This document shows, one piece after another, positions 358 to 64,000 of a DNA stretch of 64,000 nucleotides. Source of the DNA: Macrostomum lignano (Eukaryota); contig NIVC01000899.1 of assembly GCA_002269645.1 (NCBI GenBank), positions 1-64,000 of the forward strand. The letters are read 5' to 3'. Every line of letters begins with the position of its first letter. Positions within the stretch are counted from its first letter, which is position 1. The notes beneath the pieces were generated by a model. It saw nothing but the letters and a program-made list of their open reading frames with translations. It was not told where the DNA came from and made no database searches. The translations under genes and the position numbers were made by a program.

Positions 358-12074
<11,717 letters not shown>

Positions 12075-12274: not shown

Positions 12275-12700
12275 CCCCTCCGCACCTCACTTTACGCTTG
12301 CCACCCGTCGCGCACCCACCCATCCGCTCCTTGCCCTTCGCACCCCACTAGGCACGCCCGTCGCATGCGACCCCACTCCCTGCCTCTCCGCACCCCACTT
12401 TACGCCCGCCGCCCGTCGTGTGCAACCCCACTCCCTCCCACTCCCTACCCCTCCGCACCCCACTTTACGCCCGCCGCCCGTCGTGTGCAACCTCACTCCC
12501 TGCCTCTCCGCACCCCACTTTACGCCCGCCGCCCGTCGTGTGCAACCCCACTCCCTACCCCTCCGCACCCCACTTTACGCCCGCCGCCCGTCGTGTGCAA
12601 CCTCACTCCCTGCCTCTCCGCACCCCACTTTACGCCCGCCGCCCGTCGCGTGCAACCTCACTCCCTGCCCCTCCGCACCTCACTTTACGCCCGTCGCACG
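12275..12700. repeat. 55-bp C-rich minisatellite downstream of PKC
   Basis: GCCCGTCGTG recurs at 12411, 12476, 12531 and 12586 (period 55, one 65-bp variant). Confidence 0.95.
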
Positions 12701-13981
12701 TCTGTCCCTCTATAATCGAGGACAAAATTAGGTATCTCAATTAACTGCGAATTAAAGTTAATTAAAACCTTTTCCCTCTGTGCAGTTAGAACATAGGGTT
12801 ACTATATATAGCGGTGTAAAACTTGTTATATATTTAATCAGTTTACACCAAAATTATGTCGTAGAGAGCCTAAAATCAAATATATATTGGCGCTCTTTGT
12901 GCCATGTGATTTTTATTTATAAATAGTTTTTCTTTGCGCGTTTTCTGTCTATCCATTTATGCCCGTTTAACGACCCCCGTTTCATACATTAAAGCTTTTC
13001 CTATACAGCTCCAGTGTTGTACCATTTGCTGTCGTGTTCTTATTTGAGATTTTGTACTCCAAATTAATTTTATATTAGTATACGGAATTCGTGGTTTGAT
13101 TACTAGATGGCTTAGATGGCTTACAGGTTTATAGATGAGTTAAGTATGAGCAGTATTTATGCACTAGTCTTGTACACAGAACTCAGTTATCATGAAAAAC
13201 TACCCTCTGTGTATTAATTTGACTTTCTGCCTCAGTTTTTTTGTCCCTGTTCATTCAATGATGACACGAATCTTATTATTAAAATATTAACGTACTAAAG
13301 TTATTGCGAATAATTCTATATAATCAATGGTGGCAGAAATCAAATGGATTGCTATTCTATAGCTCATAAATGAAGGAATGGAATGGATTGCTAATTTATA
13401 GCCAATGTACTCATACTATCTGATTTGTGTATTTTACCCCTAGTCGATTTTCTCGCAATAAAATGCCTTTATTAATAATAATATTTGCAATAAACAGCAG
13501 TTGTATCCCTGTATTTATTAATTCCTCTGTTTATTAATACCAAAGTCTCAATTATTCAACTTTAATAATTGCTTTTACCTACTCAGAATGCTTTATAATC
13601 CAGTCAGCAGTTCTCGAGTGCTAAGCGCAGTTGCCTCTTAACTCGTCTGTCTACAAGGCGTGACATTTTGACTTTGCTGGAATTATTCAACTTTCTACTC
13701 TTATTGGTCAATGATGTTTCTGCTTTTGCTATTCTCTACACTCACAGTCACAGCGCACTTTCTCTTCGCTTTGTAAGGTCCTTCGACTTTGCCGCTTACA
13801 ACTTCTTGTCTTGTTTTCTGTCAGATTAATTAAAAATTATATGGATTATTCTTTAGATTTTGAAATAATTGAGCTTTTTTCTGTCTATTATATTTCCTTA
13901 TTGCTGTGTTACCACTGAATTTTAACTGCTAAGGATTGCAGTAGCTTGATTTTTCTTCTTTTTTTACCCTAAGTTTCAGCC

Positions 13982-15438: not shown

Positions 15439-18400
15439 ATGGAGCCAGTTGCCGCTATGGAGACCGTTACTATGGAAACCGTGGCCGCGGAATCCGTCAC
15501 TATGGAAGCGTTTGCGAGGCAGCTAAATTCGCAGGGCAATAATAATGCCCAGGGCGCGGGGCAGAAGAAGACGCAGGCGGATATTGAGGCGGATGCCAAG
15601 GCGGCCAAACGGCAGGCTTTCATCAAAAAGAAGCTGCAAGATCCCAGCAACCTGCGAATGTTCACGGCCAGTGAGTGCTGCTCAATGTTAAATGTGTTAT
15701 GCAAGAGGGCTGTGGGCCTGTGCGAGCCCGATGTCGGCCACACTTGTATAACCGATTGTCTCCTCACTAACTGCCTGTTCACTTTACTTCTCTCCTTATC
15801 ATTGTTACCAGAATAATTATTATTATTAAGATCTTTTGAATGCGATTGTAACTTTAACAGTCGAAGGCCATGCTTTATAATTGTTCACTTTTTGCTAAGT
15901 GGGCTTATAATTAACTACTTTGCTGTTTGCAGCCAGCCCCTGTTCGGCAATCAGCTGACTATATTTCTCAAGCTAATTGCTCCCCATTTGCTCCCTCCAA
16001 TTCATAGGCGAGAATCAGGTTGCGCCCTACTGGGAGACCATCACCATGGCCGATCCAAGGGAGACATTCCAGTCCAGGCAGGAGCCGCCAGGCCTCACGC
16101 CGGAGCTTAAGCGACAATTCGATGCGGCGGTGAAACTGGGCAGCAACACGGCCAAGTGGCACCACGAGAATAAAGGCGTTGTAGTGGAGTACCTGCTGTT
16201 TATGAAGGGTGAGACTGATTCACTGCACAAACCTCACTAAACACACCTCACTGAAAACACCTCACTGCACAAATCTCACTGCACACATCTCACTGAACAC
16301 ACCTCACTGAACACACCTCACTGCACACACCTCACTACACACACCTTACTGCACAAACCTCACTAAACACACCTCACTAAACAAACCTCACTGAACACAC
16401 CTCACTGAACACACCTCACTGAACACACCTCACTGCACACACCTCACTGAACACACCTCACTGCACACACCTCACTGAACACACCTCACTGAACACACCT
16501 CACTGAACACACCTCACTGAACACACCTCACTGAACACACCTCACTGAACACACCTCACTGAACAAACCTCACTGCACACAAGCTATTCGCACCTCACCA
16601 ATCCGCAGACGAAAGCTTGAACTTGCTGAAGCCGCAGTTCGCCGCCATGATCAAGAAGTGCTCGCGACGCACCAAGTGTTTCATCCTAATCACTAATCGA
16701 ATCTTGAATCGGCAGGTTGGCAAATTTAAATGGATCAAATATTTGATTGTGCAGATTCAAGGCCCTGACTACACTATGGTGAAGGTTTGCAACACCATGC
16801 TGGAACGCTGGTTTCCCGAGTACAAGCAGCGAGTTGTCTACAACAAGCAGCGGTGAGGATGCGTCGATGGGAATAAACATTCGAAGTAGGCAATAACAGT
16901 TTAGGTCAAATATAGAACTGTAGGCATTTTGGTTGATGTATCCTTTAACTAGCATGTAGCATACTGAGGAATGTGCTATAACAGAATAAGCAGGATGCGC
17001 GTTATAATTATCCCTAATGCTGATATACCAAGCTTCAAGTGGGAGTTGCTGGCCAAGCATCAGTCGGGAGAGTTAGGGTTAGGCCATGGCTTTAGGGGAG
17101 ATTCTGAGATGTCGAGAGTCAATGGGAGGTTTTGATGTCAAAGCTCACAGGGGATGCTGATATCTTTGGCCAGATAACTCGGTTTTAGGGCTGATGCTTG
17201 TTTGCTTTAAGCATCTTAATCTTAAGAAGCTAACTTTTCTGTACAATGCTTTCTACGCTCGTGCATGCACTGTTTCCGAGCGACGGAGTCATGCACGCTA
17301 AGCAATTATCCCTAACGCTGGAAACAGATGCGAAGAAATTGCGGTAAATGCTATCTGCGATCCGCGTTATCTTTATTGACTGAAGATGTCATTAATTAAG
17401 GCGGCTGATAGCTACCTCTAGTCTCAAATGACGAACACAAAGAGCCACTTATAAAGAGGTTTCTCGGCCTTGCTGCTGTACTTTATTGTCTCTCTTCTTG
17501 CTCTTGCCTTTTTAGAGAATCAATTCTCTCCACCGGCACCATACTGCTACTGCCAACGGCCGGTCCACAGATAATAAAAGTTCAATAGACAAACATGAGC
17601 TATGTTAATGTCCTTTTAATGTAGAAGCTATTGACACTGCCAAAGCGTCGAAGAGACGAACGCTCGGTTTCAGTCTTGAATCTCATCTTTACGTCATACA
17701 TCTATCCCGACATAACTTTAAGAAATCGTTATGAATACTGCCTTAAAGTCATCGCAAAATTTGTAGAAACAATTGCCACGTCTACTCACTCGTAGACAAT
17801 AACAACATTGAAATGATAGCTATTGCCCTGGCAAACAACATTAGTTATGCATTTATTTATATTTAGACAAGCTGTTGAAACCCGCGGATTTTGAACCCGA
17901 TGAATTCCAATCCCGGAACTATTATGCATACATTCTTAAATCCGAAGTCATACTCAAACAAAAAGTTATTAGTTATTATTACTTCGGGTAGAAGTAAGCA
18001 AACCTGGAGTAAATTCGTGTTAAATTTAGATTTGAGTCCTTTGAAAATTCTCTCCTCTCCTCTCCTTTCTCTCTCCACTCTGATCTGATCTCTCTCTCTC
18101 CTCTCTTATCTCCTCTCTTCATTCTACTCTCTTCTCTCTCTCTCTTCTTTTATCTGCTCTATTCTCTCTCTTTCCTCTCTACTCTCTCATCTCTCATTTA
18201 TACTCTTTCTTCTTTCTCTCCTCTCCTCTCATTAACAAACTACGGGTTTTTCACAGAGACAGGATCGAGATGGACCCAAGCAAAAATATGGGAAAACTGG
18301 GACTGCATTGGCAATTTTTGGCTTCTACTAACGAAGTGGAAAATTGTTGAGGTAGAAAATAACAGGGCTATGAATTTCGGGCTCTGTTTCGTTCTTATTT

Positions 18401-21400
18401 TTATGCACTGGTCGGAGAAAGTAAAGTAGTAGTTCTTTACCCTACACGTTATAGCAGAGTCTAATCTACTTGTACCATTCCAAACAGCTACAAATTCGGC
18501 ATCTACACAAACGAGAGCGTGGTGGACAACGTTGATTTGTACTTTCCTTACCAGCGCACCGGTAAGTGCGCCACCAGCTTCGGCGATTTGCCCTGCGAGA
18601 CGCCCTACGGCGCTACCGAGTCTCGTACGGCTCTGAGCACAGCCTGGAAAGCCAACAACAAGATGTTCGCGGCTGGCAACCTGCTGCCAAACAATGGCCC
18701 AGTGCAGAACGTGCAAAGCTACGTGTACGCCTATCATCCGCTCGGGCCGCACGATCGATTTCAGTTCCGCAGCCAGTTCGGCCTGCGCGAGCCGCCGCTG
18801 TCGTTTAAAATGCGCAGCAACATGGGCTACCCGCCAAGCAACGTGTGCGGCCCGGACTATCCCAGCCATCCGCTGTACTACGACAAAGGTGCCGAAGGTG
18901 GCGAAGACGATTCGGAAGAGCAGCAGGTGATTGGTTTTTTTAGCCGCTTTCATAGGTTTTTATGCTGAAAGAAAAGGCTGTGCTGGAAGACCGATTTTAT
19001 GGAATGTTGCGAACACAAGCTTGACCTCCAATTAGTAGCTTTCTGATCGTCAGGCCTGCACACAGCCTGTGCCTGAGGGGTTGGCTCTCATAGTTGTGAA
19101 TCACAGAATCCTTCAGACGCAGGGGCGTCGCCCAGTGGTCTTGCGCGGCGGCTCTGATGTGCCAGCGCGGCTCAGGCTCGATTACAAGTGCAGTCACCTT
19201 AACTTGTTGCTTAATTGGAATCTCGGCTTGGCTCTGCTCGTGCAATTAACGGCCTTGAGCGCCAACTTCGAAGTCACAGTGAAGTGTACATGCCTTAAGA
19301 TAAACATATTTAGGGCCGCTGAACACTCCTGTGTGAGTGTGCGCCTGTGCGTATGACTGTGCACGTATCCGCGCGCTTGTGTGCCTGCTCAGGGGTGTCG
19401 GTGGAATAGGCAGTAATGCCTCTATCCGGTTGTGGGACAATGTCTAATAATTTGTGCCAGGGTGCTCACAGCCCCTGCCTCTAATAAAACAGATCCTCCA
19501 GACGGGGAATCCAGTCTATGAACTTTTTGTGCGGGACTTGGAGATACATGTAATCTATCCTCCGACCGACCTGCATTGAACGTAAATAAACATTGCAGGT
19601 TGAAGGCAAGCTATGAAGGACAGGTAAATCAATGTAACAGAGCATCGCTTTAGTATTCGTAAATAGGGTCAAGAGTTAATCAGTTCTAAAGTCCGTTTTA
19701 AATTCGTGTTGATATAAGTGGTTATCTAAAAAATCCTTACTTAGGAGGACGCCTCCGAGGAGGAGGAGATCCTGGATTCGTCTCACTTCATCCTGGCCGA
19801 CCGAGAAATGAAAGCCAAATTCAAGCTGAAGAAGATGAAGCTCATTATGAACCGGAGACGAGAGTGGATTTTTGGTAATAAGCAGCTCGGCGTGCCTTAC
19901 CCCCAGGTGTTGCTTCCTACAACCTCCATTACGGAGAATCGCGCTTTGACTCGTAAGCTGAGGCCTGCTGCGTAATTTTTGCTAATTCACTTCCTGCTCA
20001 AAATTCTGCTTCTAAAGTACAAATCTCCAACTGCTCTGTCGCTTTCTGTTTCAACCAGGCAAGGAGGACGCCAGCTCCAAGGGTAAGAAGACCAAGAAGA
20101 AGGTGCGAGCTGAGATTCTCATACGCAACATCCGATTCATCAACGAGGACAACATCTACATGGAGTACTGCTTCGAGAAGGAGCACCTAAAACGGAATCC
20201 GATATCGCCATATCCGCGCTCTCTGGTGCCCGGCAGAGAGCTTGCCGAGCGAGTCAACGTGAACAAGGTCTACATCGGTGAGGGCGCATCGTTGGTTTTA
20301 CCATTTTCCATTCTGAATAGTGTTTGCGTACTCTACGGCCATTTCGATGTGTAACCCAAAGTAATAACCTTCAGCTGAAATTTCTCAGGATGTTCTGATT
20401 CAAACCGATTTCATCCGAATGCAAATTTGCAGATTTAGTTTTTTATTCTACCCACTCTGGTAACTCACAGAAATGAGATTTAGGGAATGGTGTCCAAACT
20501 TGATTAGAATCAAATCTGTTTTGTTGTGTGTGTGTGTGGCGATCCCCCAGTCCTTGGACTGAACAGCCGTACCCAGCCTTCAGAGACGCCGCGTAATAGC
20601 TGCAGCTGAGCTGTCGATTGCACATCAGCCCGTTGGGGCAGGTGAAATCAATTATTTATTATTAATTTGTCGCACTTTACGGAACAATTCTAAGAATAGC
20701 TTAAATAGCTTAAACATTATCTTAGCTGAGCTTAAAAAGAACAATAATTACCAATATTATCTTAACAAAGTTAACAACTTCATGCATCAGACTTCATGCG
20801 CAGGTAGTACAACGTAGAATTAGCGGCCTTTGTTATATAAATAAACTTTATATGAAATTCGGATATGTTGCTCACATGAGCAAAAAGCTTCCAGTCCATT
20901 TTCTGTGTCTAAAAGTCCCTGATTATAGAAAAAGCCACAGACTAACTAACAGTGCGGTATCAGTTGAGGCCGCCACTGAATTGAAAATATGCTTGCAACT
21001 TCTTGTGCATCGGCCTGGTGAAACTTCTTATAAGTTCTTCTGTTGGCTATTTTTTAGGGGAGATTGCTTTGTTTTTGCAGCCTAATTAGAATTTTTGTAT
21101 AGATTTTATCTTTTTTCGTCAAAAATATAGTCTTTTAATAAGCGGCGTACTAAAATTAATTACACCGATCAACCGGCAAACAGGCCCGATCAAGTTCGAC
21201 TTTGTGAAGGACAGACGCGACGAGCTCAACCAGCGTTTCCAGATGCTTGGCCAGGCCGGCAGCGATGTGGGTATGGCCAGCCAGACCCTGTCGGAGAAGT
21301 CCGCAACCGGCGGCGGCAGCGGCGGTGGCACCGGCTCTGGGCAGTCCGGTAAGCGTGCCAAAGCCAAATCGGACATGTCCCAGCAGTCGACGCCCGATCA

Positions 21401-45960: not shown

Positions 45961-47164
45961 TTATTTCGAGTTTCTCTGCTCAAGAATGTCGGACAGGAGA
46001 TCATTCGCCACAACAGGTTCGGTTTGCTGCAACGGCTCCAGCCAGTCCTTGCAGCTGGACACAATGTCATTGTACTCGGGGCCGCTCAGCAACGATTCCG
46101 GACAGTTGCTGTCCAACTGCGGGTCGTCCGGATTGCCTGTTGCAGACGCCTGGTCCAGGGCGCTGGTGCTGAGCGCGACGTCGTCTCTGCCTGAAGAGTC
46201 TCCTCTGGCGCTGAAGGAGGGTGCGGTGCTCAAGTCGGGAGCGCTCGAGTGCACGGGAGCTCGCAGGCGGTAGACTCGGCAGGCCGAACTGCCCGAGTGG
46301 AGCTGCGAGCAGGCAAGTAGTCAATGCTTTTGTTGCCAGTCAGGGCGCATCTGAGTTTCTGCTTCAGCACCGTGTAGTCTGTAGTTGATTCGCCTTAGGT
46401 TTTTTAAAAGAAGTTCAAGAATTAAGAATTTTTAAACTAAATATTAGTTATACGATGTGGACAAGTATCTAGCGATTAGATTTTTTATCACAGAATTTCA
46501 CTATCAATTTTGAGTTCAATTTCTAAATGCTATCATTGGTAGTGACATAGTTCGTAAAATAGGGTTTATTTTGTTTAACCTGCCTGCAAATGAACTAGTC
46601 TGTAGTATTGTGCTTAATCCATTTGTGGCTTGGGTTGTGTTCGGGGTCGAAAGGAGTGAAACCAAATCGCAAATATTAATTTTTTTAAAGTGAGATTCCC
46701 AGAACGAGATTATCATGTGAGATATTAAGTATCTAATGGTACGAGTAATCACGGGCTATCTTTTCCTGAGATACTCTTTCTTAGGGTGAAGATCTTAAGG
46801 CGATGCTTGCATTCTCAGGTCGAGGTTCTTAGGGCGAAGTTCTCAGGGCGAGATTCTAAAGGGCGAGGCTTTGATTCTACTACGTGTCTAAAGAAGACCT
46901 ATTAAAATTTTGGAGAAGAGCGAGAACATGCCCTCCGTCATACTTACCCCTGTGCCGCGCGTACGCCAGGAAGACATTATTCTCCCTGCGCGCCAAATCC
47001 CAGTGCGCCGCCGACATGTGCGGCCAGTCAATCCGGAAGACGCCCTCCGACTCGTCGACCCAGCGCAGGTCGGCGAGGTCGCCCATGTGCAGGTGCTGCT
47101 GAATCCACCTGTCGATGGTGCAGCCGGACTTCTCAGTTGCTGCTGTTGTTTTTGCTGAGTCCAT
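45961..47164 (-). CDS. IRF: Interferon regulatory factor IRF-A, about 216 aa (DBD plus Ser-rich/acidic tail), one frameshift
   Basis: Exons 47164-46948 (IDRWIQQHLHMGDLADLRWVDESEGVFRIDWPHMSAAHW..FLAYARHRG) and 46393-45961 (YTVLKQKLRCALTGNKSIDYLPA..CRVYRL..); same intron position and phase as IRF-B; one base missing around 46280-46310. Confidence 0.82.
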
Positions 47165-51756: not shown

Positions 51757-54700
51757 ATGGACCCCGATGGCAAGGAGGCCGAGGACGCCGTCGCCGAAGC
51801 GAAGGTGCCTCTGCGAGACGGCGAGGAAGCTACAGCGGAAGCAGCCAAGGTCGCTGGATTATTAAACACAGATGCTTCTGCACATATTCTGAACTAACTG
51901 CGAGCTTTCTTTATTCGCTCTTTCAGGCGTCAGGGCCGGTCACTGTTAGAGAGAAATGGAGCAGCAAGTTGGACTTCATTCTGAGCTGCATTGGACTCTG
52001 CATCGGATTGGGCAACGTGTGGCGCTTTCCCTACCTCTGCTATGAGAATGGCGGCGGTGAGCTTTTAGGGAGGGGTCTCAATGCCTAAGCACTTTTTGGG
52101 ATGCTGAGACAATAGAGAAAGAGCTGAGGCAGTAGAACTACTGTGCGTAGAACATCGGAGGAATTCGAATTTGACTTTGAATGCGAGCGGAGGGTCTCAT
52201 GGAGGTCAGGATAGGGCTGATCAGATGCGCCCCTCCTCTATGAGGATCTGGGAGTCCACGGTCTTTTACAATAGTCAGCACACAGTCTACTCTTTAAAAA
52301 CTGCAAATGTAGTCTTATTTGGTTTTTTAGTTAAAAAGTTAAAAATTTTGCGGTAATAAGGGTCAGTGATCCACCGGATACCTTTGACATTTGCCATAAG
52401 CAGTTTACACTTGCGAATGCCTATTTTTATTCTTCCAAACCATCTTCGGCCAAACCAGGCACCTTTCTGATCCCCTATCTGATCACGCTCTTCTTCGGCG
52501 GAATCCCCATGCTGATGCTGGAGCTGAGCCTCGGCCAGATGCTGAACGTTGGTGGCCTCGGAGTGTGGAAGTACTGCCCAATCTTCAAGGGTAAGAAAAA
52601 CCATCGGCAGGCCGCGGTGCGACCGTCGTTAAACATTGTTTTATTTGGCTGTCTGCTCTGCGCTCGCAGGCACAATCAGCCATGCAATCTTCCCCTGGCA
52701 ATGTTTGCTTACACACCACCGGTCTCTGCGGGGTCGGGGCGCCGGTCCAACTGAGATGAGGAATCTGTCATCTTCGCTTTCCTCCGCCTGCTAGCTTCTG
52801 GATGGGACAACTCGTGGAATGGGAAGGCAGGCATCCCGTCTGAGCCACAGTGGAAGCGACAGCTGGGTTGCAACAGAGCGATAGAGACGAGATGAAGGGA
52901 GCCTTGAGAGATTGTCTTTTTTCAGAAAAAGCCATTCGGCTTAATTAATTGTCTCTGACAGAGTGGAATGGCTTTCAAATTTCTCGTCTCCGACAGGAAA
53001 CACAATTGCGACAACTGCCGAAGAGGGTCAGGAGAGTTTTGCTTTTTCAATTTAATTTTTGCAGCCCCAGTCAGCCTCGGTTCCTTGAATCCTAGATTTC
53101 TATCCGATTTGGCAATAACAAAATTCATGACTTGCTGCCTGCGAATGCTTGCAAGGCCCCACTGTCGGTCCGTCCAGACGGAATCGACGCAAGCTAAAGG
53201 TCAATTCATGTAATCGGGCCTTTTCACGCAGCGCTCTTTGAACTTTGATTTCAGGTGTCGGCTTCTGCGCCAATATAATGGCTTTCTGGCTCAACGTGTA
53301 TTATATTGTCATTGTGGCCTACGCGCTTTATTATCTTGGCAACAGTTTCACCATGGGCGAATTGCCCTGGAAGAAGTGCAACGAAAGCTGGAATACGCAC
53401 TGCTGCATGTCCACTTTCGCCAACAATACGGGCTTCAACTGCACCATGGTCAACATCTCCTACTCCGCCACGAATTTCACCCGCGGTCTGCTGCCGACCA
53501 CCCTGATCCCATCCGGCTACAATGACAGCTGGGGCCCAATCTCCGTGATTGGGACAACCAGCGAGATGGAGCAGTGCCAGCTGTGCGGCAAGGACAGCTG
53601 GAACTCGCCGGTGGCCGAATTTTGGGAGTGAGTTGCTTTTTCAATCTGTTTTGTACTCGTATGATGCCTGTGCACTGTGGGCTACTCAGGCGGATGGAGG
53701 CATGGGCCCATGCCTGAACGGGTCCAGAAGTATTGAGCCATTTTATTAATTTCAACCTCTCCAGACGCCAAGCGCTGAGCATGTCCACCGACATTGGAGA
53801 GGCCGGAGGGCTGCGCTGGCAGCTGGTGCTGACGCTGGGCATCGCTTGGATCGTCTGCTACTTCTGCATCTTCAAGGGCGTTCAGTGGACCGGAAAGGTT
53901 GTTAATTTGGTTGAGCTTGCTAGTTGTGTGAGCGCTTTGCTGCGGGAAAAAAGGAAAATAGTTGAATGCTTTTCTGGAAGATATACTGGTTAATAGCTTT
54001 AGGATTGAGAATTTGAAATTCCTAATAATGACTTGGGCTGTGTAATCTTGTGGAACTCACGTCCAACAGCTGTCAGAATCCGCTTGGAACTGATTGCAGA
54101 TAGTGTACGTCACAGCTCTGTTCCCGTACATGCTGCTCATCATCCTGCTGTTCCGGGGCATCACACTGGACGGAGCGAGCATTGGCATCGAGTACTACCT
54201 GAAGCCGAACTTTACCAAAATTCAGGAGTCAAAGGTGGTCTTTAATTTTTAACCAATAATAATTCCAGCAATGTTAAATTTTAAGTCAGTTATGTCAACA
54301 ACAGTTAATCAAATCGAATGAAGCTGAACTTGAGTTTGCATTCCCACTCGCAGGTGTGGCTCCAGGCCGCCTCTCAGATATTCTTTTCCCTGGGCCTAGG
54401 CCTCGGCACGCACATAGCTCTTGGCAGTTACAACCCGCTAACCAACAACTGCTACAAGTGAGTGCCTGGCAATGCTCCGTTTTTCGTTGCATGCACCCAG
54501 GGTCTACCCTATTTGCTTATTCCGTCAATGCTTTTTATCAACTGCAACCACAAACTGTCTTCCGCAAAGGGATGATGAGTTGGCTCATTTGTCTCTGTGT
54601 CTCTCGTTCTCCTTTTTTGTATTTTTTTTCCATCAGGTGCTTTACACATGTAGCTTCAGGGTATAGTGTCAGGTAATCGCGTATTCTCTTTGAATATAGC

Positions 54701-57700
54701 CCCACTGTCCCGCTCTAACCCCCACCCTCGTCTCTCCGCGCGTGAAGCCACGGAGAGGCGTCATAACTCACGGAGCCTCAGCGCAAGGCAAAGGTTCTCT
54801 ATAGCTTAGACAGCTGAAGGGATTCAGTTCCCAGTTTATTCTGTTAGCTCCCGAGCCTCAGTGTCAACTAGCCATATCAGCTATGCCAGGTGTCTCATCC
54901 CGTCAGTAAGGGCTCACCGTTACTCGCTTCATTGCGCCCCAACCTGAGGCCTGGGGAAGAGTTCTCCGTTTCAGCACTGAAAAAGCCATAGGGAATTGTA
55001 AAAAAACGATTCCAAAAAAAATCCCTCTATCGCTCCACTGCAGAGATGCACTTTTGGTTGGCACCATCAACTCGTGTACCAGCATCTTTGCCGGTTTTGT
55101 CATCTTCTCAGTAATCGGATTCATGGCCAAAGCGCAGAAGAAGAGTGTTAGCCAGGTGGCCGCGTCAGGTGAGGCTTTTGACGAGGGTAAAAATGCAGAT
55201 TTTCAAACAGGAATTCAGCTCTAAAATAAAAGCCCAATGCAGCAAGGTGAGTAAATAAACTGCCAATAAGCTCTTCAAACCATTGAGCTTAAAAATAAAT
55301 GCAGTTGAGGAGATGGAATAGAAAATCGTAGGCGCTTCTCCAGGCGTAGAAGCTGCCGCCAGCTAGTCGGCTCTAGAATGCAGCACTTTTGCAATTATTC
55401 TTTTGTTCCAATTTCTCATAATCATATGCAGTTTTGTAGTGGAAATATAACAAAACAGATGTTCGCAGATGAGTAGCTTGTTTAAATTACTCGCTGGTGT
55501 TATGCCAAAAACTACTTAACTACAGTAGCATAGTGCGATGTTTCTACATAACTTTTAGGTGAATGCCTCAACGATCTCGCAATATGATACACTATCATTT
55601 ATTTGCATGGGAAATTCACTAAAACATGATCATCACTCTCCAATCACTCTCGAATCACTTTGCAATCACTTTGCAATTACTTTGCAATCACTCTGCAATA
55701 TCTCTGCAATTAATCCACAATCACTCTACAATCACTCCACAATCACTCTGCAATTACCCCAAAATCACTCTACAATCACTCCACAATCACTCTGCAATTA
55801 CTCCTCAATCACTCTGCAATTACGCCACAATCACTCTGAAATCACTCCACAATCACTCTGCAATCACTCCACAATCACTCTGCAATTACTCCTCAATCAC
55901 TCTGCAATCACTCTGCAATCACTCCACAATCACTCTGCAATTACTCCTCAATCACTCTGCAATTACGCCACAATCACTCTGAAATCACTCCACAATCACT
56001 CTGCAATTACTCCTCAATCACTCTGCAATTACGCCACAATCACTCTGAAATCACTCCACAATCACTCTGCAATCACTCCACAATCACTCTGCAATTACTC
56101 CTCAATCACTCTGCAATCACTCTGCAATCACTCCACAATCACTCTGCAATTACTCCTCAATCACTCTGCAATCACTCTGCAATTACGCCACAATCACTCT
56201 GCAATTACCACACAATCACTCTACAATCACTCCCCAATCACTCCGCAGGTCCGGGCCTGGCTTTCCTGGCGTATCCGTCCGCTATTTCTGAGCTGCCCGC
56301 AGCTCCGATCTGGGCTGTTCTGTTCTTTCTGATGGTCTTCTTTGTTGGCATTGACAGCCAGGCAAGTGACGGCCGTTATTTCAGGTGTTAATGTTTCTAG
56401 ATCAAGATCATTTAACAACGGCGCAATGCTAAACAAATTGTAGTTCTGCACCGTCGAAGGCTTCATCACGGCGGTGGCAGACGAGTGGCCACTGCTGCGT
56501 GTGCACAGAAAAAAGTTTGTGCTCGTCCTCTGTATGGTCTCCTTCGTTATCGGCCTGTCCATGGTCAGCACGGTGAGAAGAGCGTTAAATTTTCCACAAA
56601 GATGTTCAGAATTTTTAATCCTTTGAACTCTGAATCCCTCCATGACTTTTATGCAGTTACTTGAAGTAACTGATCCTTGAAAGGCCAGTTGACATTATTG
56701 CTAGTCGCTCAGCAGGTTAAGTATTGCTCAAATCAATCTTGAGCAATCTTGGACCCTCGGAGCTAATTAGAGGAAATTTGAACGGAATTCAGTGTCAATA
56801 CTCTACTCAACGTAGTTTGATGAGACTTGCAACCATCAGATCAGCCTCGAACTCCTCAACCGCTGCTGCCGCAGGGAGGCGCCTACGTGTTCAACATGTT
56901 CGACAGCTACGCGGCCAGCGGCCCGGCCCTTCTGCTGCTCATCGGATTCGAGTGTATCGCTTTTGCCTGGTTCTTCGGTAAATTGTTCTGCTATACTTTT
57001 ATCACTGCCCTCCGGACCTGTTGATATATAGACAACGCTTAATCATACGGGCCAACCCCCGAGGGCCCAAGAGGGCCGCCAACCCCCGGTACACAACCTG
57101 AAAATCAGATTTGAGCGCGTCTGTGTACTCAAGAGTTACAAGCCCCATTTACAATGTTTATATTAAGTTAAGTAATGTATAAACGACCTTTTCAGGTATT
57201 TTCCGCCTCCGTGAGAAGATGAAGATGGTGATTGGACATGCGCCGCCCATTATCTGGCAGATCTGTGTAACCGTCCTGTGCCCTCTGAGTTGCTTCGTGA
57301 GTGCAAGATTTGGTTCCTTACGTTTAAGTCGAATGATAGTACTTTCTAAAACTTGACCTTGCATTTGACCTTGAACTATACCTTCATGCAGGGCGTTTTG
57401 GCCTTTTCTGTGCTGGAGTTTAAGCCGCTGATCTATACGCGGTCCACGGCCCCACCTTACAAATACCCGGACTGGGCCCAAGCCCTGGGGGCCATGCTGG
57501 CCCTGTCGTCCGTGGTTGCCATACCCATCTACGCCATCTATTATGCCATTCGGACGCTCTGCTTCACCGACAATAAGCACAATCTGCCACTGTCTAAGGT
57601 GAGCTTGACTGAGCACACTCAGAGAGGTTGCATAAACTGGTAATTGCTCGGATTTCGTCCTTAAAAGTTTCATTAAGAAGGTTTAAATTGCAATTGGAGT

Positions 57701-60444: not shown

Positions 60445-62341
60445 ATGTCAGAGAGAAGCGTCAGTCTCGAGCTGCTTGCGGTTGATGGACGGCGGTTTCG
60501 CTGCCGGCCCGACCCAAGGCACTTCGCTCCAGTTCAAGGCCGGTTCGGGCGCATCTTCAGAGTGCGCATCAGCGCAGCCGAGACTAGCGAAAGCACCGCA
60601 GACGAGACGGCGGCAGTTTACTGCGCGGACAAGGCCGGCAGGAAGCTGCTTAGCTGCTTCAGCATCCTAGCGCAGTTGAAGCACGATAACATTGTGCGCC
60701 TCATCGCAGCTGCCAGGGACGCTGACAGCGCCGCCTCGGTGTGCGTCCTCATGGAGTGGGTGGGCGCTGGCAGTCTACGCGACCTCATTGACCGAAGCGG
60801 CTGTCTGACAGAACCCTTGATTGGAGCGTACGCAAAACAGGTTTGTTTTATTCGTACATAGTCATTTAATTTAACTAATTTACATTGTTACATAACAATT
60901 AAAAACAAATTGACTTCGCAAACTGCAACATGGTCTCACTATCGGATGAGCTCTTGTCAATATCTGCTTTCTCTCTGTAAACTCTGATCCCGAAAAGGCA
61001 TTGTAAAAATTTACTTCAATGCGCAGATCGGATCGGCCTTGAATTACCTGCACAGCCGCAGCATTCTGCACCGCAATGTGAAATGCCGGTCCGCACTGAT
61101 CACGGAATCTGGCCATACTAAACTGGCCGGCTTCACCGCCTGCTGCCTCCTTGAAGAGGACGACCCTGACGCGTCGCTAGATGTCCGTCAGTTTGGCTGC
61201 TTTCTGGTCGAGATGGCTACCGGTAGGACCGGCTGCAAGGAGGCACCGGAATCTTCGACGAACCAGCTGCGCAGTCTGTGCGAAGCGTGCGCAGAGCAGC
61301 AGCGGCCTCGCATGGAGCAGCTGTTGCAGCTCGAATTTTTCCAGTGAGTCCTCGCTATTGCCTGAGTCTGGTAATAAAAGCTTAGAAATATCAGAATTGA
61401 GAGTGGCGTTTAGAATGGAAAACATGGAAAGCAAGGTCTTGGTTGAAAAAATACAGAAAAATGTTTTAACCAATGTTCGACAATGTCAAGTCGATTCTAT
61501 TCTAAGAAAGTATGAGCTATGAGCTATAAATATGAGCTAGAAAGTATGAGCTATAAATTAGATTGTCTAAAAAAGAACAAACACATAGACATGAACAAAT
61601 GGATTTCCTCTTCTAAAAAATTACTGAACAATCATTTCCTGTTAAAGTAATGCCATAATAATGCTTGTTTCCGCCGCTGTTGTAACAAACAGAACGATGC
61701 AGTCGCTTAAGCCTCTGCTGTCGCCGTCGCCTCCGACGCCGACGCAAGCCCTCAGACCGGTGAAATCTGATCGCTGCCTCCTGGGCGGCCGAGCTGAAGT
61801 AGGTGCCAGCGCACCCGAGGTCCTCCTGCCACAGCGCCGGCTTGGAGAGAGCGACGCCACCGAGGAGCTGGACGATGATGACGAGGCCGGAGCCCGCGGT
61901 CTGGACAAGTACCGGCAGACAGACGACGAGGATGAGGATTATTTCGAGCTGGAAGGGACGGATTTTGAAGAATTAATCGAAGAGGACGAAAATGAACAAG
62001 ATGAGGAGGATGCGCAGGCCTGTCAAATTGATCGAGAACGCCTGCTGGGCCGCGGCCGGTTCGGCTCTGTATTCCGCGCTGACCTGCACGGAATGCCGGC
62101 CGCTGCGTACAGAACAACGCCCGGATGTCCAGAGGAGACGCTAAAACAGTTTCGGGCAAGCTGTCTTATTCTTGGCAAACTGAGGCACGACTGCATTGTT
62201 CGACTCGTGAAAGTGCTGAGCGACAGCTCCGGCTGTCTGACAGTCCTCACGGAGCTAGTTGAAGGCCGCAATCTGCGCTCCATTCTGACTCAGCGAAAGG
62301 CCGGATTTAGAGAAGGCGACCTCCGATCCTACTGCCGACAG
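60445..62341 (+). CDS. STE11/MAP3K-derived pseudokinase gene, probably two kinase-like domains in tandem; 3'-partial
   Basis: Exons 60445-60840, 61027-61343 (or to stop 61347) and 61693-62341. Domain 1: GRFGRIF, LKHDNIVRL, LMEWVGAGSL, YLHSRSILHRNVKC, KLAGF, DVRQFGCFLVEMATG. Domain 2: LLGRGRFGSVF, LRHDCIVRL, LTELVEGRNL, YCRQ then donor GTATCA. Both domains have a phase-0 intron at the equivalent position. Rest of domain 2 not found in the window. Confidence 0.8.
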
Positions 62342-63089
62342 GTATCAACCATATACTAAAAATGGTCTGTCGGTAGGTAGGTATGTAGGTATGTGTGTGA
62401 TCGGTTTTAGCAAAAATGGCTCAACCGATTTTCTTCGAACTTGCACTGTTCGATCAGAAATTTTTCCGTGACGGTACCAAGGACTACTTAACAACTCCTT
62501 GTTAAGTACTGTAGTCCTTGGACGGTACATGCATCGTAACTAAGAAATTTCTCGATGCTAAAAGGATTAAATATTCGAAAAACATGCTTTTTTGCAAAGG
62601 TCAAGCAGCTCTTTCGACTTGAAATGCATTGTAAGAATGCTAGAGAAAAAAACTGACTGGTTGAATTCTGATTCTGAAATGGATTGCATCACAATTGGCT
62701 TTTTATTTATCGTCTGTGTAGTGGCTGAATTTTGAGACTGAATTGAACTGCGTCACAGTATTGAAAATGCAGTGTGGAAGCATAGCACAATTCTTGATTT
62801 ATATTGCGTAACCATATTGCTAACTTTAATACTGGTACTGACTTGCCTAAGAAATTGATTATGTCATTACTGCTTCGTGTGACTGAGTGTTGAATTATAA
62901 GTGCTACAAATAGATATACTAATTAATTTATAAATTCGATGAGAGCTAACCTAGATGTGACCACACTGGACGGCTAATGCAGCGACCTGAGTTCGAATCT
63001 TAGTAGTGTAAAAATAAAAGTAGCATATTTTTTTTATTTAAAGCTTTTATTAAAGGGCTAATTAAAAAGACCTGGATTATGGCGCTTGA

Positions 63090-63425
63090 TACACCAAGGA
63101 TTATTGCACTTGATAAACCAAGGATTACTGCACTTGATAAGCCAATGATTACTGCACTTGATAAACCAAGGATCACTGCACTTGATAAGCCAAGGATCAC
63201 TGCACTTGATAAGCCAATGATTACTGCACTTGATAAACCAAGGATTATTTCACTTGATAAACCAAGGATCACTGCGCTTGATAAACGAAGGATTATTGCA
63301 CTTGATAAGCTAAGGATTATTGCACTTGATAAACCAATGATTATTGCACTTGATAAGCCAAAAATTATTGCACTTGATAAGCCACGAATTATTGCACTTG
63401 ATAAACCACGGATTATTGCACTAGA
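63090..63425. repeat. 24-bp minisatellite (ATTATTGCACTTGATAAGCCAAGG), decaying to about 63640
   Basis: Tandem units; source of the RIIALDKP-repeat ORFs. Confidence 0.93.
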
Positions 63426-63779
63426 TTAGAAAGGGCTATTGTACTAGCCGAGACATTGATTTTTGGACTTGTTGAGTAAATGATTATTGCACTAGATGAG
63501 AAAATGATTATTTCACTGGCTTAGAAGCTGATTATTGCGCTGTCTAAAAAAGAGATTATTGCGCTAGCTGAGACGTGGATTGTTGCACAACCTGAGAAAG
63601 CGATTATTGCATTAGCAGAGGTAACATTTGCACTAGCTACTTGCTGTCTGGTGGATGCTTGCTCTCGAGGGGGGGGGTACCTGCTAATTGAGAGAGGGGG
63701 GGGGGTACTGGCTACATGTATGGTATTTTTTCTATCCAGGGATGCTTGCTATTCAGGGATTCTTGCTATCTGCAGGATG

Positions 63780-64000
63780 CTTGCTATCTGGGGTGATGCT
63801 TGCTATATGGGTGGATGCTTGCTATCTGCGGTTGCTTACTTTTGGAGGGGGTGCTTGCTATCTGCGGTTGCTTACTTTTGGAGGGGGTGCTTGCTATCTG
63901 CGGTTGCTTACTTTTGGAGGGGGTGCTTGCTATCTGCGGTTGCTTACTTTTGGAGGGGGTTTCTTGCTATCTGCGGTTGCCTACTTTTGGAGGGGGGTGC
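63780..64000. repeat. 36-bp minisatellite (TTGCTATCTGCGGTTGCTTACTTTTGGAGGGGGTGC), runs off the window end
   Basis: Tandem units. Confidence 0.93.

Follow-up and report, generated by a model that had tools for sequence, protein, structure and literature searches.

Architecture of the locus

The DNA analysed here, referred to below as the window, is a stretch of 64,000 nucleotides from the flatworm Macrostomum lignano (contig NIVC01000899.1, positions 1-64,000 of the forward strand). It contains a complete, catalytically dead kinase-fold domain, K1, with both its N-terminal and C-terminal lobes (N-lobe and C-lobe), followed 349 bases on by the front half of a second kinase, K2. The locus is a highly diverged, lineage-specific pseudokinase from a large kinase expansion and not a new kind of signalling protein. 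Judging from the sequence, K1 and K2 would be adjacent, strongly diverged members of an M. lignano-specific STE-like kinase family, and predicted cis-splicing would fuse K1, a linker and K2 into one chain; to this reading as a whole we give an even chance. The parts of the locus are listed in Table 1.

Table 1. Parts of the K1-K2 locus, with positions in the window
Feature	Positions	Strand	Description
K1 exon A	60445..60840	+	start ATG at 60445; N-lobe through alphaD; 3' end CAG/GTTTGT
Intron 1	60841..61026	+	186 nucleotides, GT..AG, 32% GC
K1 exon B, C-lobe	61027..61343	+	ends ..LLQLEFFQ, the natural kinase C-terminus
Spacer or candidate intron 2	61344..61692	+	349 nucleotides, AT-rich; donor GTGAGT, acceptor AAACAG with upstream pyrimidine tract
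Linker	61693..62020	+	Pro/Ser-rich first, then strongly acidic; third-position GC 0.65, sole open frame there
K2 exon A, N-lobe only	62021..62341	+	GRGRFG intact; donor CAG/GTATCA at 62341/62342; ends ..SYCRQ/
Downstream AT-rich sequence	62342..64000	+	24-bp repeats 63074-63615; 19/36-bp repeats 63741-63996

The three exons of the fused frame (60445-60840, 61027-61343 and 61693-62341) have a GC content of 59-62%, compared with 32-37% in AT-rich non-coding DNA. They are open over 454 codons, with a GC content at third codon positions (GC3) of 0.58-0.71 against 0.64-0.85 in neighbouring conserved genes; K1 exon A alone has a GC content of 0.61 and a GC3 of 0.70. Splicing out intron 1 restores the sequence ..AKQ/IGSALNYLH, which aligns with kinase alphaE, and the two K1 exons together encode 238 amino acids ending ..RPRMEQLLQLEFFQ. 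The identity of K1 to any active kinase is at most 38% in BLAST alignments of at least 60 residues, and a 454-codon frame that has stayed open with coding-type GC3 despite this divergence argues for selection on the protein.

K1 has the fold of a kinase and lacks its catalytic residues

The Pfam Pkinase profile (PF00069) matches K1 with an E-value of 1.5e-22 and 80.7 bits (cut-off 31.7). A protein kinase homolog is classed as a pseudokinase by sequence when it lacks one or more of three residues, namely the VAIK Lys, HRD Asp and DFG Asp; the states of these and other motifs in K1 were read from an alignment of 74 sequences. The HRD Asp is replaced by Asn149 (HRN), the catalytic-loop Asn by Ser154 and the alphaC Glu by Cys71; the equivalent of DFG is Gly167-Phe168-Thr169 (GFT). 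Gaps extend across the whole GT..APE segment, the APE and P+1 columns being deleted, and part of the alphaG region is deleted as well. The glycine-rich loop in exon A is degenerate (VQGRFG). The beta3 Lys column is ambiguous, falling on Tyr58 by pattern and on Glu54 in MAFFT, with Lys in neither. Since both the HRD and the DFG Asp are replaced (by Asn149 and Gly167, respectively) and the beta3 Lys is gone, K1 is by sequence a pseudokinase. It cannot transfer phosphate by the canonical mechanism, because all catalytic residues and the activation segment are lost, and any function it has must therefore be non-catalytic.

An earlier note on this DNA had already listed the catalytic Asp, the loop Asn, the alphaC Glu and APE as lost from K1, and these calls hold in the 74-sequence alignment. 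It had placed the DFG equivalent at AGF, which is incorrect, and its replacement of the beta3 Lys by Tyr stands only in that no Lys is found there, the choice between Tyr58 and Glu54 being ambiguous.

K1 retains the structural, non-catalytic residues His141, His147, Arg148, alphaF Asp184, Gly189 and Arg225. An AlphaFold2 model built with the same alignment is a confident, compact kinase fold, with a predicted local distance difference test score (pLDDT) of 87.9 and a predicted template modelling score (pTM) of 0.86. In Foldseek searches the nearest solved structures to this model were SLK, Aurora A, ASK1 (TMq 0.79, the highest), MST2 and MEKK2. The profile matches of both domains and the modelled bilobal fold of K1 place K1 and K2 in the eukaryotic protein kinase superfamily. 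A fold core that is kept while the catalytic residues are gone is, at the level of sequence, typical of functional pseudokinases.

Sequence matches to K1 in the PDB include both domains of JAK1, the GCN2 pseudokinase domain, MAP3K2, SGK1, PAKs and S6K, mostly at 44-55 bits. MAP3K2 is the top match over a single stretch, at 51 bits. The earlier note had described the domains as MAP3K-like; MAP3K2, ASK1, SLK and MST2 are indeed among the best matches of K1, but other groups score alike, with JAK1, GCN2, SGK1, PAKs and S6K near the 51 bits of MAP3K2 and the SLK, Aurora A, ASK1 and MST2 folds indistinguishable. The label appears acceptable only as a loose affinity to the STE group.

K2 is represented by its N-lobe

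K2 matches the PK_Tyr_Ser-Thr profile (PF07714) with an E-value of 2e-8 and 34.3 bits (cut-off 23.1), over profile positions 3-110 only. As the earlier note had stated, it keeps GRGRFG and has Ser in place of the alphaC Glu. The beta3 Lys is absent (AAAYR); the residue in its place is Arg in the alignments to ALK and to the M. lignano kinase model P0221, resembling the VAIR of KSR, and Tyr in one other alignment. A Lys-to-Tyr change shared by K1 and K2, which had also been proposed, is therefore sound as far as the loss of Lys in both domains, but in K2 the replacement is Tyr or Arg according to the alignment. The best-scoring PDB matches of the K2 N-lobe include ALK, TNNI3K, KSR2 and RAF, at only about 30 bits.

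Recovery of the downstream exons of K2, suggested earlier as a way of reading its HRD and DFG motifs, gave none up to the end of the window: tblastn of positions 62342-64000 with the K1 C-lobe and one domain of the M. lignano model P0021 returned noise only. Read through, the donor at 62341 gives ..CRQVSTIY followed by a stop. A C-lobe exon of K2 would lie outside the window, on the far side of an intron that repeats have expanded to over 1.66 kb, or would have been lost. The same holds for the catalytic and activation loops of K2, with their HRD and DFG motifs. The earlier claim of two dead domains is unproven, the C-lobe being missing in the window as well as in the sole database model. The repeat array at the 3' end of the window sits where one would expect to find the C-lobe exon of K2.

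K1 and K2 are outlying members of an M. lignano kinase expansion

A protein search with one P0021 domain detected dozens of M. lignano kinase models, forming a species-specific expansion whose nearest relatives elsewhere are plant MAP3Ks (YODA, MAPKKK5) and PAKs. Its members are mostly of the active type (HRDIN, KLIDFG), and a few have GFG. Membership was recognised by a two-exon unit, a phase-0 intron before I-x-S-A-L (alphaE), a C-terminus of the form ..LL.HEF(F/L), and best relatives within the species. On these sequence features K1 and K2 belong to the STE-like expansion that includes P0021, P0180, P0215, P0220 and P0127. K1 scores 62-64 bits to P0215, P0021, domain 2 of P0127 and P0180, and both K1 and K2 are outlying members, with an identity of only 26-31% to the family.

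The family unit can be followed in detail at another M. lignano locus (L001; NIVC01001483.1, assembly Mlig_3_7, 16796-19283), which holds the transcript-based GenBank gene BOX15_Mlig009993g1 (P0127). There the unit consists of an N-lobe exon ending ..xQ, a phase-0 intron of 86 or 117 nucleotides, and a C-lobe exon beginning I-C-S-A-L. The intron position is identical in K1 (AYAKQ/IGSAL, 186 nucleotides), in K2 (SYCRQ/) and in both L001 domains. Because it is common to both L001 domains, it is ancestral to the family and uninformative about a duplication specific to K1 and K2; its presence in K2 also indicates that K2 originally included a C-lobe exon, which it may have kept or lost. The N-lobes of K1 and K2 match each other at about 40 bits (31% identity), compared with 51-54 bits between K2 and P0221 or P0220 and 50-57 bits between K1 and generic kinases. 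The earlier suggestion that the two domains arose by duplication after inactivation is thus not supported, the intron being family-wide and each N-lobe being closer to other kinases than to its neighbour.

BOX15_Mlig009993g1 is also a precedent for tandem copies joined by cis-splicing. Its first domain (HRD/DFG) is joined to a second, HRN/GFG domain by a 590-nucleotide cis intron just after the C-terminus of the first, and the frame, if unspliced, would stop 7 codons later. It resembles K1-K2 in family, in two-exon unit and intron position, and in the placement of a cis intron after the first domain; its second domain resembles K1 itself in its HRN motif and in the Gly that replaces the DFG Asp (GFG, compared with GFT in K1). 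It differs in its low identity to K1 (about 31%), in having a first domain of the active type and both C-lobes, and in lacking a long acidic linker. At the same locus, the first coding exon is duplicated 7 kb upstream (10001-10093, compared with 17051-17143). In a further model, P0021 (UniProt A0A1I8G4U5), three active kinase domains, almost identical to one another, are arranged head to tail (..HEFFIV/RDSWDF..); the model is either a genuine protein with several kinases or the product of merging a tandem array. Tandem kinase/pseudokinase models recur in M. lignano (P0021, P0127).

A single database model contains the predicted fusion

The only close protein match to the window is UniProt A0A1I8GH17 (P0001; M. 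lignano, 'Protein kinase domain-containing protein', 432 amino acids), at 906 bits. It is about 98% identical over the aligned parts, with the same start and the same K1-linker-K2 junction (LEFFQTMQSLKP), and like the window protein it stops just beyond the K2 N-lobe. It derives from another genomic copy, which retains the open frame and differs at 7 amino acids. Apart from this one near-identical M. lignano copy, no relative was found among 1.84 billion protein representatives, and no orthologue outside M. lignano. Most other top matches in the global protein scan are long models that string together 5-10 kinase stretches and resemble merged arrays.

The earlier note had regarded the architecture as previously undescribed; a fused model, albeit uncharacterised, is already in UniProt, and tandem models are recurrent in this species. 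Its proposal of an in-frame fusion junction is plausible, and that junction is the one used in A0A1I8GH17.

The K1 stop codon lies inside a splice donor

If K1 exon B is not spliced, translation ends at TGA 61345-61347, which overlaps the GTGAGT beginning at 61344. Splicing from the donor at 61344 to the acceptor AAACAG/A (61692/61693) keeps the frame, so that ..LEFFQ continues as TMQSLKP.. through the linker into GRGRFGSVF and the rest of the K2 N-lobe. The earlier note had described this as a stop within a perfect donor, spliced in frame to 61693. The overlap with the stop, the frame and the linker are as it described, but the donor has consensus sequence only in its intronic part; the exon ends in CA where the consensus has AG. 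The dominant donor motif of M. lignano is GT[G/A]AG, which GTGAGT fits (PMC8629364). Among the TGA triplets of the window, 2% sit in GTGAGT and 6.5-10% in GTGAG; combined with a frame match (one in three), a stop inside a donor would be expected by chance in about 0.7-3% of cases. A 13-bp tandem repeat, TATGAGCTATAAA, is present in about three copies at 61518-61558 within the spacer or candidate intron.

A pre-mRNA that extended into K2 would, by cis-splicing from 61343 to 61693, lose the K1 stop and encode a chain of K1, acidic linker and K2. Without this splicing, for example after early polyadenylation, the product would be K1 alone. The two outcomes could constitute a switch between two isoforms. 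K1 would act non-catalytically, most plausibly by pairing with or regulating active family paralogues or their partners, and a scaffold or decoy role could be envisaged.

Several points weigh against the fused reading. The ATG at 61697, 4 nucleotides past the acceptor and in good context (A at -3), would be the start codon of K2 if K2 were a separate gene, and it suits two genes equally well; so does the termination of K1 exactly at the C-terminus of the kinase domain. The AATAAA at 61373, 26 nucleotides past the K1 stop, would also fit two genes, but as evidence for a poly(A) signal we rejected it as uninformative because 35% of comparable AT-rich windows carry AATAAA. Family introns at the position that ends the K2 N-lobe are 86-186 nucleotides long, whereas that of K2 would exceed 1.66 kb. 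A0A1I8GH17 is an automated, uncharacterised model with clear defects: it lacks 27 amino acids of K1 (VGAGSL..AYAKQ) through a weak alternative predicted donor, and its end (..CRQVSSIY) results from read-through of the 62341 donor. In P0021, which belongs to the A0A1I8 accession series of UniProt as well, three near-identical active kinase copies are fused, so the fusion in A0A1I8GH17 may be a prediction artefact. For these reasons A0A1I8GH17 was down-weighted as independent proof of the junction. Finally, no transcript-based protein of Mlig_3_7 was found for this locus in databases whose coverage of M. lignano is patchy. This absence is weak evidence, because a 128-amino-acid exon of the neighbouring SLC6 gene likewise gave no candidate in a 5.8-billion-protein database.

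One gene or two

A tentative but serious alternative, one that we rate clearly short of even, treats K1 and K2 as separate genes in tandem that may share an operon, the UniProt fusion being a merge made in gene prediction. K1 would be polyadenylated soon after its TGA, K2 would start at ATG 61697, and the AG at 61692 would be a spliced-leader (SL) trans-splice acceptor or would lie within the 5' untranslated region of K2. In M. lignano 30-39% of genes are trans-spliced, and operon spacers are shorter than 1 kb (PMC8629364), a distance within which the K1-K2 spacer falls. It is such spacers, together with an ATG so close to the acceptor, that make two operonic genes a serious alternative. It also gains from the merging of tandem kinases in A0A1I8-series models, from the other defects of A0A1I8GH17 and from the long multi-kinase models at the top of the protein scan.

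The donor, however, would then have to overlie the stop and be in frame with K2 by chance. A cis donor on the same pre-mRNA is in principle expected to out-compete SL trans-splicing (PMC8629364). The acceptor AAACAG falls outside the SL-acceptor motif [T/C]TNCAG, though the motif itself is present at only about 44% of SL sites (PMC8629364). Trans-splicing at this site would moreover bring in the terminal ATG of the SL, opening an out-of-frame upstream open reading frame of 6 codons (MNDAVA, then a stop) over the ATG of K2.

Within the reading of K1-linker-K2 as a cis-spliced fusion, a stronger version would have M. lignano making a true double pseudokinase, in which the K2 C-lobe is also dead and in which splicing and polyadenylation switch between single and tandem forms. 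The locus would then be one case of a recurrent cis-splice fusion of tandem kinase duplicates, as in BOX15_Mlig009993g1. We consider this version doubtful.

That K1 and the K2 fragment are merely non-functional relics in decaying duplicate DNA, K2 having been cut off by repeat insertion, is improbable: the loss of all K1 catalytic motifs, the deletion of its activation segment and of some of its alphaG region, the lack of a K2 C-lobe within 1.66 kb (family introns being 86-186 nucleotides), the single near-identical relative in the protein search and the missing transcript-based model would all agree with decay. Yet, although the sequence has diverged very deeply from active kinases, 454 codons have remained open over the three exons, the splice sites are intact and GC3 is of the coding type. 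The six structural residues of K1 are selectively kept within a confidently predicted fold, and the frame is also open in a second genomic copy, whose product is about 98% identical in amino acids.

Comparison with known kinase and pseudokinase systems

JAK1 (55 bits) and the GCN2 pseudokinase domain (35 bits, residues 71-170) are among the best sequence matches of K1, and the JH2 domain of JAK2 resembles K1 in its HRN catalytic loop and in the absence of the alphaC Glu (PMC13519141). Tandem kinase proteins as a class (JAK, GCN2, RSK/MSK and the plant examples below) carry two kinase-fold domains on a single polypeptide, at least one of them catalytically competent; at this locus such a chain would rest on the in-frame donor/acceptor pair that an automated model uses, with K1 dead and K2 half present in the window. 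JAK and GCN2 differ from K1-K2 in having an active kinase partner domain and extra domains (FERM/SH2 and RWD/HisRS, respectively). Orthology of K1 to GCN2 or JAK was rejected, as K1 scores no better to them than to many active kinases. For K2, the possible Arg at the beta3 position recalls KSR1/2, but the closest relatives of K2 are the M. lignano models P0221 and P0220 rather than KSR2, RAF, TNNI3K or ALK. The JAK JH2 domains, the GCN2 pseudokinase domain, KSR and viral MLKL, which has a truncated activation loop, all work non-catalytically (PMC13519141).

Plant tandem kinase proteins such as WTK1/Yr15 and RPG1 have two kinase-fold domains per chain, as predicted for K1-K2; these are derived from duplication or fusion, and pseudokinase domains are used non-catalytically. 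In contrast to K1-K2, the plant proteins serve as immune receptors, come from other kinase families and as a rule retain one active domain, and they have no sequence relationship to K1-K2.

If the fusion is true, it would provide a case of an animal protein in which kinase-fold domains stand in tandem and none is visibly an active partner, and an example of tandem duplicates becoming a multi-domain protein through a stop embedded in a splice donor; it would be relevant to research on pseudokinases and on flatworm genome evolution. As it stands, the locus holds an uncharacterised pseudokinase that is confined to its lineage, in a genome where kinase duplicates abound, and it opens no long-standing question.

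Other features of the window

A multi-exon gene for an SLC6/SNF sodium:neurotransmitter symporter (PF00209) lies immediately upstream of K1, at 51900-57650 on the strand that also carries K1 (+), with its end some 2.5 kb away from K1. On the opposite strand, an open reading frame (ORF) at 46880-47164 (-) matches the DNA-binding domain of interferon regulatory factor (IRF, PF00605) with E = 1.1e-10. The exons at 10442-10600 and 11826-12074 (+) encode the C-lobe of an AGC-type kinase with a Pkinase_C tail (PF00433) and PKC-like motifs, unrelated to K1 and K2. Further long tandem-repeat arrays are found at 55559-56332, 10788-11384 and 12365-12744. The tandem-repeat arrays of the window (24-bp, 19/36-bp and others) yield spurious long ORFs, for example (ALDKPRII)n.

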